Notes: generated by a model from the letters alone, not told the origin. Positions 19,963 through 46,352 are shown, counted from the stretch's first letter. The stretch is DNA of 64,000 nucleotides from Heteronotia binoei (GCF_032191835.1 NC_083235.1:15810001-15874000), one strand, 5' to 3'. Numbers and translations: made by a program.

Positions 19963-19989
19963 TGCAGGATAGAATCAAGGAAGTAAAAG

Positions 19990-20273
19990 GAGAAGGAGAA
20001 GAAGAAGATGACATTGGATTTATATCTCACCCTCCACTCCAAATCTCAGAGTCTCAGAGCAGCTCACAATCTCCCTTCCTCACAACAGACACCTTGTGAG
20101 GTAGGTGGGGCTGAAAGAGCTCTCCCAGAAGCTGCCCTTTCAAAGACAACCTCTGCCAGAGCTATGGCTGACCCAAGGCCATCCCAGCAGGTGCAAATGG
20201 AGGAGTGGGGAATCAAACCCATTTCTCCCAGATAAGAGTCTGCACAGTTAACCACTACACCAAACTGGCTCTC
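19990..20273 (-). mobile_element. Squam3-like SINE (S1, hybrid copy at the outer end of the left duplication arm)
   Basis: Family match; 5' half resembles the 46087 copy, 3' half and flank resemble the 38193 copy. Confidence 0.8.
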
Positions 20274-20464
20274 AAGGAGTGGGCAGAGAGGGGTGCATAG
20301 CTCCTGTCATGAGCAAAAACCAAGAAGTGGGGACACACAGTTGTGGCACAACATAGAATTTTATTGCACTGAAATCCATGGCAAGGGGGGATGACTGGCC
20401 ATTTCCACCCTGGGGCTTGAGGATCCCCGGCATGGCATAAGCCTGAGTGGGATAAACGTCAACT

Positions 20465-20941
20465 GTGAGGTGACATGATAAAGATTTACAAGATAATGCA
20501 TGGGATAGCGAAGGTAGAGAAAGAAGTACTTTTCTCCCTTTCTCACAATATGAGAACTCGTGGCTATTCAGTGAAATTGCTGAGCAGTCAGGTTAGAACT
20601 GATATAAGGAAGTCCTTCACCCAAAGGGTGATTAACACGTGGAATTCACAGCCACAGGAGGTGGTGGCGGCTGTAAGCACAGACAGCTTCAAGAGAGGAT
20701 TGCAAAAACATATGGAGCAGAGGACCATCAGGCTATTAACCACAGCATATTGTTGGAACTCTCTATTTGGGGCAGTGATGCTGTGTATTCTGGGGGCTTG
20801 GAGGGGCACAGTGGGAGGGCTTCTAGCCCCACTGGTGGACCTCCTGATGGCACTTGGTTTTTTTCCACCATTGTGTGGCACAGAATGTTGGACTGGATGG
20901 GCTATTGTCCTGATCTAACATGGCTTCTCTTATGTTCTTAG
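20465..20941 (+). mobile_element. CR1 LINE 3' fragment
   Basis: ORF 20475-20918 IKIYKIMHGIAKVEKEVLFSLSHN...NTWNSQPQEVV; TATGTTCTTA tail. Confidence 0.85.
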
Positions 20942-21646
20942 CACTGCAAGTAGACCGAGGAAGGGCTTGCCAGGTGCAATGCTCTGCTTCAAGAGGAGGG
21001 CTGGGATGGTGGACTGAGCAGTGTGGGAGGGCAGGATAAGTCACACCCACAAGTCTCTTTGTTGACTCTCCACCTGCAAGACAGGAAAATGGAGCCATCG
21101 CCACCAGGCATGAGTGCCATGCCAGCCTCAGCCATGGATGTCTTGTCCCGACAGGGTCTTCAATGCAGCCTCATGGGAGAGGCTGACCACCCCCCCACCC
21201 CCCTTGCAGGATGGGACCAGCCAACTTGCACTCATCCATCCCATGGTGAACTGGTCCCGGATTGCTTGCAATTCATCCCCCAGCAGCAGCTGCAGTTGCA
21301 AGGGAATGAGTTAAAGAGACACCCGCCAAACTGAGCAGATGCCAGACCCCCCCACCCCGTCCAACCACAGACATGCCCTGTGCTTTGTCAAGGGTGGGAA
21401 CCAGTGAAACTACAGGATCTTAGCGTACAGCTGTGAAAATAAAAAACTGCTAAGAGACACCATATATTTTAAACAAGACAGTATAATGTAGAGGTCAGTG
21501 GTGTTCTGACCAAGCGTGCACATAGCACTTCAAATCAACAAGAGCGTGTAGCAAAAAGACATTCACAGAAGATACAGTTCAAAAACAGTCTGTCCAATCA
21601 CAAAGGAGTAACAATATTCCAGTATTTAGTTCAAAGAACTAAAGGA

Positions 21647-21713
21647 AGCCCTTCCAAAGACGTCTATTCTAGATATCAAGATGTTTCATCCGTCTTTCTT
21701 CAGTTTGGAGGCT
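21647..21713 (-). ncRNA. Type I hammerhead ribozyme motif (minus-strand copy)
   Basis: AGCCUCCAAA CUGAAGA AAGACGGAU GAAAC AUCUUGAUAUCUAGAAUAGAC GUC UUUGGAAGGGCU: complete core, GUC cleavage triplet, stem I CCAAA/UUUGG. Confidence 0.7.
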
Positions 21714-21868
21714 TATTTATCACTGCAACCCAGTCTTTACAATACAATCATAGAAGACCAACAAGGTCCAGAACATGTCTGTTGGAACCTTGAAATCTAA
21801 TAGACATGTTCTGAACCTTGTTGGTCCTCTATGAATGTATTGCAAAGATTGGGCTCCAGTGATAAATA

Positions 21869-43139: not shown

Positions 43140-43872
43140 CCTTCTTTATCTCATCCATAATTTTGTAAACCTCTCTCATACCACCCCTGAATCCTCTATA
43201 AGCATTTCTTTAAAAAACCCTCCCCCCTGAAGAGTAGAATAAAAGGATTCACAGATCTCAATTTCTACTCTACTCCTGTTAGGGTTGCCAAATCCAATTC
43301 AAGAAATATCTGGGGACTTTGGGGGGTGGAGCCAGGAGACTTGGGGGCTGGAGCTAGGAGACATTGGGGTGGACCCAGAAGCAAGGTTATGATAAGCATA
43401 ATTGAACTCCAAAGGGCGTTCTGGCCATAATATTTCAAGGGATTGCACACCGTTTAAAATCCTTCCCCCATTGGAAATAATGAAGGATAGGGGCACCTTT
43501 TTGGGGGCTCATAGAACTGAACCTCCTGATCCAATCATTTTGAAACTTAGAGGGTGCTTTGGGGAGAGGCACTGGATGCTATACTGAAAATATGGTGCCT
43601 CTACCTCAAAAAACAGGCCCCCCCAGAACCCCAGATATCCGTGGAACAATTCTCTATTATTTCCTAAGGGAATTGTTCTTCATAAGGAATAATGAACAGC
43701 CCAGCAGACATCCCTTCCCTGCTTTCTGATTACCCTGAAGTGGGGCGAGGGCCTCCAAACCGGGGGAATCCCCTGTCCCCACCTGAGGATTGGCAACTCT
43801 AACTCCTGTAGGGTTGCCAAGAACTGTAAGACCTCCTGGTTCCTTCCAACTTTGATTCTCTCCACAGGTCGC

Positions 43873-44808
43873 ATGGACTGTGAGAATGGCACTGACATTG
43901 TGGAGTTTGTCCTTCTTGGTCTCTCCTCACAACTTGAACAACAGTCTCTCTTCTTCGTCTTCTTTCTGCTGATGTATGGGGCAGGCCTCCTGGGCAACAT
44001 CATGATGTTCATTCTCATCACCGTGGAAACCCGGCTTCAAACCCCCATGTACTTCCTGTTGCGGAGCCTTTCCGTGGTGGATGTGGGCTTCCTCACAGTC
44101 ACGGTACCTCAGATGCTGGTCCACCTCATGTCCTCTTCCAAGACAATCCCTTTCTATTCCTGTATGGCTCAGTTCTTCTTCTTCTATGTGTTTGGCGTCA
44201 CAGACATTTTCATGGTGAGCGTTATGGCTCTGGATCGCTATGTCGCCATTTGCAACCCGCTTCACTATGCTATGGTGATGAACCGGAAGGTCTGTGGATG
44301 CTTGGTGGCTGGGTGCTGGATCACTTCTACCCTCCACTCCATGCTGCATGCTGACCTCCTCCTGCGCCTCAGTTATTGTGGGGACAACCACCTGCCCCAC
44401 TACTTCTGTGACCATCAGCCCTTACTCCAGCTCTCCTCCTCAGACACCAGCATCAATGAAGGGGTCATCTTCTTCGAGGGCATTCCTGTCATCCTGGGGC
44501 CCTTTGCCTTCATCATCATCACCTACCTCCGCATTGTGGCAGCTGTGATGAAGTTCTCCGCCTCAGGAAGGCGCAAGGCGTTCTCCACGTGTAGCTCTCA
44601 TCTTACCATGGTGGTGCTCTTCTATGGTGCAATCATTGGGGTCTACTTCCTACCCACATCCAGCTATTCTTCCCAACGAGGGACCATTTTTGCCCTCATG
44701 TACACTATCATCACCCCAATGTCCAACCCCTACATCTACAGCCTCAGGAATAAAGAGGTCCAAAAAGCCCTGAGGAATCTCTTGGGTAGGATATCATTTT
44801 CTCACTAA
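43873..44808 (+). CDS. OR1B1-like: Olfactory receptor OR1B1-like, copy B (311 aa, intact)
   Basis: 17 aa differences from copy A by manual count; FGVTD, PHYFCDH and ILGPF match recalled human OR1B1; acceptor CTCTCCACAG at 43858-43867. Confidence 0.92.
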   Translation: MDCENGTDIVEFVLLGLSSQLEQQSLFFVFFLLMYGAGLLGNIMMFILITVETRLQTPMYFLLRSLSVVDVGFLTVTVPQMLVHLMSSSKTIPFYSCMAQFFFFYVFGVTDIFMVSVMALDRYVAICNPLHYAMVMNRKVCGCLVAGCWITSTLHSMLHADLLLRLSYCGDNHLPHYFCDHQPLLQLSSSDTSINEGVIFFEGIPVILGPFAFIIITYLRIVAAVMKFSASGRRKAFSTCSSHLTMVVLFYGAIIGVYFLPTSSYSSQRGTIFALMYTIITPMSNPYIYSLRNKEVQKALRNLLGRISFSH

Positions 44809-45417
44809 TAATTGTGAGATGTTAGTCCCTGCACATCCCTGATCCGATGCTTCATAAGTGACTTTGAGAAGTGTTCTTAAGAAGGGATGGCCAAAGGGGG
44901 CCCCATTCATTCAGTCATTCATTCATTCACTCATTCATTCATTCACTGGCTCACTCATTCATTCATGGATTTCATTTTTAAAACATTAATACCACTTCCA
45001 GACTATATGAATCTTTACCTGGGTGAAGAAGCACACAATAATTGTCTAGAGTTACTTAAATTAAAAGTGTCACGTCAGTACAAGTAAACTTAAAATTAAA
45101 AAAAGAATATGTGATCACTGTTGTATCCGTGGGGCACAAATTGTTTGGCCAGGAGATGAAAAGACCATGAGACTGAATTTCACAACCTGTCTGGTTCAAG
45201 GAGCTCCTTTTAGATTGGTTAGCACTCATTTTCCGCTTGACTGTTCTCCAGCGATAAATGAACTTATGACTTTTCATTATTGCACCCCTTAGTGTTTCTT
45301 CCTGTTGATCTGTTTCTGTAAAAAATTGATGTCTTCCCATATCAGAAGTGCTTCAGTTGCATTTAAATGGTGTATAAACTACATCAGATTGTTGCCTGCC
45401 ACTATCACTATAAAGGA

Positions 45418-45650
45418 AAAGGTAAAGGTAGTCCCCTGTGCAAACACCAGTCATTTCCGACTCTGGAGTGATGTCGCATCACAACGTTTTCATGGCAGAC
45501 TTTTTACGAGGTGGTTTACCATTGCTTTCCCCAGTCATCTACACTTTCCCCCCAGGAAGCTGGGTCATTTTACCGACCTCAGAAGGATGGAAGGCTGAGT
45601 CAACCATGAGCCAGCTGCCTGAACCCAGCTTCCTCTGGGATCAAACTCCT
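45418..45650 (-). mobile_element. Sauria SINE (paralog of 23250-23525)
   Basis: AAAGGTAAAGGTAGTCCCCTGTGC start on the plus strand. Confidence 0.8.
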
Positions 45651-46086
45651 ACCACTTTACTAGACCATACTACTATACCATTATATACCACTATACTCAC
45701 TATTTATTTATTTAGATTTTTATTGCACCCTCCCCAAAAGTGGGCTCAGGGTGGATTACAACAAGAAAAGAGTCCAATAACTCTTTCCAATAAAATTCAG
45801 CATATATATATATATGTGTGTGTGTGTGTGTGCGTGTATAATCTATCTATCGATATCGATAGATAGATAGATAGATACACACAGACGCACAAAGAGTTTA
45901 TAAGAATTAAAATCATTAAAATATAACATTAAAACAGGTAGCAGCAATTGCACAGAGACTTTTTTAGTCTGCATAGATTGAGTCAGAGGGATGCAATAAA
46001 ACTCTATGTTGTGCCACAACTTTGTGTCTCTGCTTCTCGGTTTTTGCTCATGACAGGAGCCATGCACTCCTCTCTGCCCATTCCTT

Positions 46087-46352
46087 GAGAGCCAGTTTTG
46101 TGTAGTGGTTAAGTGTGCGGACTCTTATCCGGGTTTGATTCCCTGCTCCTCCACTTGCACCTGCTAGGATGACCTTGGGTCAGCCAAAGCTCTGGCAGAG
46201 GTTGTCCTTGAAAGAGCAGCTTCTGGGAGAGCTCTCTCAGCCCCACCTACTTCACAGGGTATCTGTTGTGTGGGAGCAAGATAAAGGGGATTGTGAGTTG
46301 CTCTGAGATTCGGATCAGAGGGCAGGGTATAAATCAAATGGTGTCTTCTTCT
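46087..46352 (+). mobile_element. Squam3-like SINE (S3, outer end of the right arm)
   Basis: Family match; 5' flank shared with S1. Confidence 0.8.

Follow-up and report, generated by a model that had tools for sequence, protein, structure and literature searches.

A circularly permuted, inverted copy of an olfactory receptor gene joined within a mosaic SINE in Heteronotia binoei

Two olfactory receptor genes in an inverted duplication

We analyzed a 64,000-nucleotide stretch of the Heteronotia binoei genome (GCF_032191835.1 NC_083235.1:15810001-15874000), here called the window, with positions counted from its first letter. The window contains an inverted duplication with one intact olfactory receptor (OR) gene in each arm and three associated short interspersed elements (SINEs), designated S1, S2, and S3. 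An initial annotation, made from the sequence alone, had described these SINEs as copies with swapped parts and had read them as the record of an OR gene duplicated through circular DNA. The coordinates of the three elements and the exchange of parts among them both held in our analysis.

Self-comparison of the window paired a left arm (20274-32733, minus strand), interrupted by an N gap at 22953-23118, with a right arm (38657-46085, plus strand) to which it is inverted. The pairing comprised five colinear blocks, all inverted: left 20274-20368 with right 46086-45992, left 22867-22952 with right 45994-45905, left 23119-25792 with right 45782-43133, left 28320-30497 with right 42694-40508, and left 30824-32733 with right 40513-38657. 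Insertions found only in the left arm occupy 20369-22866, 25793-28319, and 30498-30823. The first two are blocks of approximately 2.5 kb each, and the first contains a further SINE-like repeat at 20554-20947. A small inverted insertion within the left arm (30507-30607, minus strand) is a copy of 30108-30207, with 95/100 matches.

The left OR gene (24133-25068, minus strand) and the right OR gene (43873-44808, plus strand) are both intact, each a single open frame of 311 amino acids. The right copy matched Pfam 7tm_4 with a score of 163 bits. The two proteins differ at 17 amino acids, with a synonymous divergence (dS) of 0.067, a nonsynonymous divergence (dN) of 0.024, and a dN/dS of about 0.36. 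Exact-match look-ups of both proteins in other assemblies gave no record. The closest annotated OR homologues from other species, including geckos, share approximately 86% protein identity, a separation far older than the duplication. Further OR genes are present within the window.

Across 6814 aligned bp the arms differ by 328 substitutions (4.8%). This divergence is uneven, ranging from 1.2 to 9.2% across 250-bp windows, which suggests conversion tracts. At 23729-24478 and 29019-29769 it is only 1.2-3.2%, compared with 8-9% in the windows alongside, and the OR gene pair shows a single difference within codons 211-311. Judged from sequence, gene conversion between the two inverted arms could account for these low-divergence stretches.

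A mosaic SINE and the permuted order of the left copy

S1 (19985-20273, minus strand, with a (CTT)n-like tail), S2 (38192-38484, plus strand), and S3 (46086-46363, plus strand) are SINEs of the Squam3B type. A consensus built from 28 genomic copies agreed block by block with the published Squam3B consensus (PMC7983390 supplement). It displayed the tRNA-like head GAGAGCCAGTKTGGTGTAGTGGTTAAG, the CORE-like body, the 3' end ...GCGGGATAT.AAATCCAA, and the (CTT)n tail. The Squam3 family has been reported to have few target-site duplications (TSDs; PMC7983390). In our TSD scoring, true pairs ranked barely above mismatched pairs (p of approximately 0.07 for the pair belonging to S3, 0.26 for all others). 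The CCTT preceding GAGAGCC was considered as a TSD of S1 and rejected, as it recurs at many Squam3 copies. Reads from another squamate, mapped to 20052-20286, reached thousands-fold depth on parts of the Squam3 body and were tenfold lower over 20146-20192. Many of these reads skip approximately 74 bp (20123-20198); in that species the central region of the SINE is evidently shorter or different.

S1 is a mosaic of an S3-like 5' part and an S2-like 3' part. On the 5' side, the flank of S1, already noted as shared with S3 in the initial annotation, differs from that of S3 by 9 substitutions in 95 bp, and the homology carries on into the arm. On the 3' side, S1 (19963-20114) matches S2 (38352-38506) at 147/152 positions with one 3-bp indel, an alignment that spans the 3' body and tail and reaches 22 bp into the flank. 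This 22-bp flank (ACTTCCTTGATTCTATCCTGCA; 19963-19984, minus strand, at S1) is identical to that of S2 (38485-38506, plus strand). Searched against the 2.63-Gb genome with up to two mismatches, the 22-mer occurred twice, both times at this locus. The flank is therefore locus-specific. That it might instead belong to a common subfamily tail had been raised in the initial annotation; with two exact copies in the genome and three mismatches in the next-best match, we rejected this possibility.

The bodies of the SINEs were compared among 30 copies, including 28 other genomic copies. For the 3' 118 bp of S1, S2 was the closest (96.6%, rank 1/30), followed by the next best at 92.4%, while S3 was the most distant (80%, rank 30/30). 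Six 3' sites are shared and derived in S1 and S2, among them a 9-bp deletion found in 0/28 of the other copies. The shared 3' half and flank proposed earlier are borne out. For the 5' 149 bp, S1 matched S3 at 90.1% and S2 at 86.6%, the lowest among the 30 copies; unrelated genomic copies reached up to 95%. Shared derived states link S1 and S3 at only two 5' sites, GGGATGG and CTGGGAG. Most of the 5' variants originally listed as linking these two elements, GCACCTGCT and CTCTGGCAGAGG among them, are the family consensus. S1 carries none of the 13 private 5' changes of S2, yet has the derived 3' states of S2. A breakpoint test on S1 gave a maximum chi-square of 17.6 (permutation p = 3e-4) and placed the crossover at 20081-20114 in S1, 38342-38385 in S2, and 46227-46270 in S3. 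This agrees with the initial annotation, which had placed it at about 38342-38385 and 46229-46270.

S2 and S3 are direct repeats of approximately 290 bp that bracket the right arm. Followed in the coordinates of the right locus, the left copy runs from 38657 to approximately 46227 and then from approximately 38342 to 38506, the two stretches being joined inside S1. It is a circularly permuted version of the right unit with one novel head-to-tail joint, and mapping of both the arms and the SINEs confirmed the direct orientation and permutation noted initially. The left copy amounts to approximately 98% of one turn through the 3' part of S2, its flank, the arm, and the 5' part of S3, and is without only 38507-38656. 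This 150-bp segment (plus strand) is genome-unique, ends in TTTTTAAAA, and lies between the points to which the two ends of the left copy map (38506 and 38657, separated by 150 bp in a unit of 7.9 kb). It had no match above shuffles in the left arm or spacer, and no second copy in the genome. No third paralogue that could serve as an outgroup came up when the genome was searched with the 150-bp segment, the two flanks, and the ends of the arms.

The swapped block does not stand on both sides of the source. No third copy of the 22-mer or extra copy of the 150 bp exists, and the 3' part and flank of S3 are unlike those of S2. As the source is without a second swapped block, the locus passes the filter against false positives that Takahashi and Innan applied (PMC7188851).

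A homologous join between S3 and S2, which are direct repeats, is a step common to all viable models. One such model is a free circle. Homologous recombination between S2 and S3 would loop or copy out approximately 7.9 kb containing the OR gene and a hybrid SINE; the circle would then open within the 150 bp beside the S2 flank, lose those 150 bp, and be inserted by end joining, inverted, at a point 6 kb to the left. A copy of nearly one full turn, with ends so close together in the source, is what such a circle would yield. The position of the novel joint inside two direct repeats and passage of the published filter also favor it. Cattle KIT reportedly offers a precedent. Three human segmental duplications offer another (PMC7188851). 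Against it, return within 6 kb of the origin is unexpected, and retention of the donor also requires a copy-out step or a sister chromatid. We regard this route as possible but doubtful. The loop-out version proposed in the initial annotation accounts for the permuted topology, from which alone it had been drawn; it does not predict a nearby, inverted copy or the features of the joints described below.

Joints, spacer, and assembly

Beyond the 22-bp flank, the outer joint of the left copy contains a 61-bp inverted segment (19903-19962, minus strand, plus a last base shared with the flank, giving a 1-nt overlap at 19963). The whole, 19903-19963, is an inverted copy of 19415-19475 with 57/61 matches. 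This source is the end of a transposable element (TE) across a miniature inverted-repeat transposable element (MITE; 19476-19902) that has terminal inverted repeats of approximately 48 bp and a nested 218-bp repeat at 19617-19834. Other copies of the TE family are at most 86% alike and continue past the point where the 61-bp segment stops. A free circle leaves this templated piece unexplained. The TE itself (18752-19476) has terminal inverted repeats of approximately 230 bp (18752-18981 and 19257-19476) that are 82% identical. It adjoins the MITE, a member of a 145-bp family split by the 218-bp repeat, such that three nested or adjacent elements lie outside the left arm.

The outer joint also bears on a two-step history. 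Here, a plain inverted duplication would have carried the whole of S3, and a later break at the outer end of the left arm would have been repaired from S2 by synthesis-dependent strand annealing (SDSA) that began in SINE homology, and then end-joined, so that the 3' half of S1 and its flank were replaced. The piece shared by S1 and S2 differs at 5/152 positions (3.3%), compared with 21/235 in the adjacent outer arm and 8-9% in windows there, and a second short templated piece lies at the same joint. The gap in divergence is marginal, however, as 3.3% is compatible with the arm mean of 4.8%. Repair would also have had to select, from approximately 10^5 SINE copies, the one located 170 bp from the inner end of the arm. 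Paired arms align S1 with S3 rather than S2. We consider such a patch improbable.

At the inner joint, the left arm abuts the 5' end of LINE-A (32726-35366, plus strand), a 2.64-kb long interspersed element (LINE) that bears a reverse transcriptase and has family-typical 5' and 3' ends. Boundaries of LINEs and repeats were taken from genome-search match tables. Arm homology stops at 32728 and similarity to the LINE-A family begins at 32724-32726, an overlap of 3-5 nt. Many copies of the family start at the same position, and the best relatives are 94-95% identical; LINE-A appears similar in age to the arms. The right-copy counterpart of this joint reads CCATTTTTAAAA|GTTTGAG, a TTTT/AAAA point that we take to be a typical LINE nicking site. 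The inner end of the left copy thus coincides with an exact LINE 5' end and with a TTTT/AAAA site in the source, and the original boundary may have lain elsewhere. That the two ends adjoin in the source may therefore reflect the LINE site and not the opening of a circle, in which case their adjacency would be secondary.

Directly past the 3' end of LINE-A lies a third, partial arm copy (35370-36766, minus strand), which corresponds to left 29619-31731 and right 41373-39610 and has the orientation of the left arm. It begins at an A-rich site before a 300-bp high-copy SINE and, outside one divergent patch, is approximately equidistant from both arms. The series of left arm, LINE, and partial left-arm repeat looks like what a LINE would leave if its insertion duplicated the target on a kilobase scale. 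All three arm copies contain a tandem array with units of approximately 105-210 bp (30989-31580, 36155-36766, and 39765-40291), its copy number varying among them, and related units occur at 55097-55647. The rest of the spacer consists of a second LINE fragment (36767-37720, plus strand, boundaries approximate; open reading frame at 37003-37686) and a high-copy repeat of approximately 470 bp (37723-38190) that forms the 5' flank of S2. Further spacer joints fall at 35366/35370 and 36766/36767. Had a circle been cleanly inserted, the outer target would continue beyond the inner end; the sequence found there was LINE-A followed by the arm fragment, and not a continuation of the target from the outer side.

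The partial copy indicates more than one duplication step at this locus and so lends some support to a longer history. Unequal crossover between S3 and S2 would generate a tandem array with a hybrid SINE, inverted duplication or transposition would place a unit on the left, and the array would collapse to a single unit. Nonallelic homologous recombination (NAHR) between direct SINEs yields exactly the observed hybrid, with S3 sequence at its 5' end, S2 sequence at its 3' end, and the flanks seen here. Tandem arrays of OR genes are common, and the window holds other OR genes. In human segmental duplications, 49/52 permuted patterns were judged to be of this kind (PMC7188851). This history nevertheless calls for three or more events whose breakpoints are conveniently placed. 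A second right unit has left no trace, neither the 22-mer nor the 150 bp having an extra copy, and the diagnostic second block is absent from the flank of the right locus. Such a series is unlikely, if slightly less so than patch repair.

The assembly itself could be at fault if S1 were a chimeric path through a SINE, or if the 5.4-kb contig that holds it (17558-22952) were misplaced. The window contains four N gaps, its shorter contigs measure only 1.1 and 5.4 kb, and S1 is separated from the contig with the rest of the left arm. No public sequencing run contained locus-specific unique words. Four raw-read runs mapped to 19300-20700 derive from another species; they left the unique parts uncovered and reached thousands-fold depth on the SINE. 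The single gap-free contig 23119-55713 takes in S2, S3, the spacer, the right arm, and most of the left. The gap of 166 N (22953-23118) falls in noncoding arm sequence, and no gene crosses it. Its flanks are colinear with the right arm, where 122 bp (45783-45904) stand opposite the 166 N, so order and spacing across the gap are consistent. In the S1 contig, 181 bp are homologous to the arm and stay colinear on crossing the gap. Five substitutions and an indel distinguish the S2-like piece from S2, which marks it as a separate genomic sequence. Even with a chimeric SINE, a second copy of the 3' part of S2 and its flank would lie beyond the S3 end of the arm, and the permuted order would stand. 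We therefore judge an artefact to be improbable, on a par with patch repair.

Template switching and related systems

The sequences at the joints also bear on the direction of copying. Right to left is favored from the sequence relationships, because all non-repeat sequence of the left copy also occurs on the right, the 150 bp is found only there, and both left ends are non-homologous joints. Genome searches found both the 150 bp and the 3' flank of S3 to be unique to the right locus. The opposite direction, which the initial annotation had offered as its second option, makes the left copy the original. A single crossover would have taken its circle into a SINE already present between the 470-bp repeat and the 3' flank of S3, leaving S2 and S3 as reciprocal hybrids. 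One reciprocal crossover would account for both right-hand junctions. In addition, S1 is close to the family consensus along its whole length, and the 3' part of S3 is further from the young consensus than its 5' part. This direction, however, makes the 150 bp new filler that has no source in the genome, and it requires the circle to have ended at a truncated local inverted copy on one side and at a LINE terminus on the other. Whole-element genome searches found full-length relatives for both S2 (88%) and S3 (85-87%), and S3 has the best TSD-like match, although this is weak. We find this direction highly improbable, and the integration of a left-locus circle is disfavored.

Our preferred reading, held tentatively and at somewhat less than even confidence, is a local error of replication or repair with a template switch from SINE to SINE, resembling fork stalling and template switching (FoSTeS), microhomology-mediated break-induced replication (MMBIR), or a fold-back. 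The source would be the right locus (S2, the 22-bp flank, the 150 bp, the OR-bearing arm, and S3), with the left arm a derived, inverted copy. A nascent strand copying the right unit would leave S3 near its middle and re-pair with S2, the nearest upstream SINE in the same orientation, approximately 7.9 kb back on the same template. Copying of the 3' part of S2, its tail, and the 22 bp beyond would follow. This switch from S3 to S2 would make the hybrid S1 and hence the permuted order. A second switch would add the 61 bp of inverted local sequence, after which the end would be joined beside the MITE. At the other end, the LINE, with the third partial arm copy behind it, would have been joined at or soon after the event, and both OR copies would have remained intact. 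We infer a right-to-left direction, a single chain of events, and no free circle.

Template switching or fold-back would be predicted to leave proximity, inversion, chimeric SINEs, microhomology, and templated insertions (PMC3907307, PMC11293582). The left copy is inverted, with 5.9 kb between it and its source, as is typical of duplications formed by fold-back or template switching. Upstream of S3, the nearest Squam3 copy with the same orientation is S2. Several junctions in cis overlap by short stretches, as expected of template switching; the overlap is 1 nt at 19963 and 3-5 nt at 32724-32728. The third partial arm copy, roughly equidistant from both arms and next to a LINE of similar age, also speaks for this reading. 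Templated inverted local insertions are present both at the outer joint (57/61) and within the left arm at 30507-30607, the latter similar in age to the other pieces. Divergences of the individual pieces (3-7%, from small counts) overlap the arm mean of 4.8%. Comparable features are found in humans, where inverted duplications have a median spacer of 3.4 kb and some junctions in SINEs or with insertions (PMC3907307), and where iterative template-switch junctions show templated insertions and Alus chimeric at 83-85% similarity (PMC11293582).

Several observations weigh against template switching. The left copy is almost exactly one turn with ends 150 bp apart, an outcome whose chance we estimated at approximately 0.04. 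A circle predicts this near-single turn, whereas a chain of switches needs coincidence or the argument from the LINE site. The genome holds no remnant of a longer left copy, either as the 150 bp or as a second 22-mer. The junctions could be separate events rather than one. The divergence between S1 and S2 (5/152) is below the 8-9% of the adjacent outer arm, which hints that the S2-derived piece is a later addition. Support for the 61-bp local copy is moderate, at 57 matches compared with 52 for another copy in the window.

OR families expand by local duplication, usually attributed to unequal crossover. The joints at this locus are kept well enough for a mechanism to be read, and a SINE-to-SINE join gave a permuted, inverted copy with its gene intact. 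If confirmed, it would provide a clear example, from outside the mammals, of complex duplication mediated by SINEs and a test case for separating circle reinsertion from template switching. As a single locus it carries moderate weight: SINE-mediated complex duplication is already known, and the example at an OR locus is new. It is conceivable, though we doubt it, that SINE recombination freed a 7.9-kb OR circle that re-entered 6 kb away to give a second intact receptor gene. If true, this would be a SINE-driven circular-DNA route to the birth of a chemoreceptor gene, recorded in a hybrid SINE.

Durkin et al. 2012 reportedly described translocations of KIT through circular intermediates in cattle colour-sidedness. 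The initial annotation drew this comparison, which is apt in topology: both loci have a permuted copy, one novel head-to-tail joint, and new ends that adjoin in the source, an adjacency that may be secondary at our locus. In cattle, the copy lies on other chromosomes, and serial events and population data serve as evidence. Here, it lies 6 kb away and inverted, the joint is inside two SINEs, templated pieces and a LINE occupy the joints, and the evidence is a genome assembly. A passage of PMC3784456 cites the circular-intermediate model for cattle KIT. Human segmental duplications mediated by extrachromosomal circular DNA (eccDNA; Takahashi and Innan 2020, PMC7188851) show the same dot-plot signature of two swapped blocks. 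Short reads of 19 people, along with chimpanzee and macaque as outgroups, were used to check those candidates, in contrast to the assembly-based evidence here, and no repeat-mediated hybrid joint of this kind was described among them.

Fold-back inverted duplications (PMC3907307) resemble this locus in having arms a few kilobases apart, SINE or LINE homology at some junctions, and insertions at some breakpoints. The human cases are large, terminal, and coupled to deletions, whereas this is a 7.7-kb interstitial duplication seen in a genome assembly, with a spacer now filled by TEs. Further likenesses are found in Alu/Alu rearrangement and iterative template switching (MMBIR and duplication-triplication/inversion-duplication, DUP-TRP/INV-DUP; PMC11293582, PMC4352052). 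These share with our locus a chimeric SINE formed between elements approximately 85-90% alike, junctions in cis with 1-5 nt of microhomology, templated insertions, a near inverted copy, and a partial triplication. In classical DUP-TRP/INV-DUP, the homologous switch proceeds via inverted repeats. At this locus the SINEs are direct, so a backward switch on the same template would produce a copy that is permuted, and not merely inverted.

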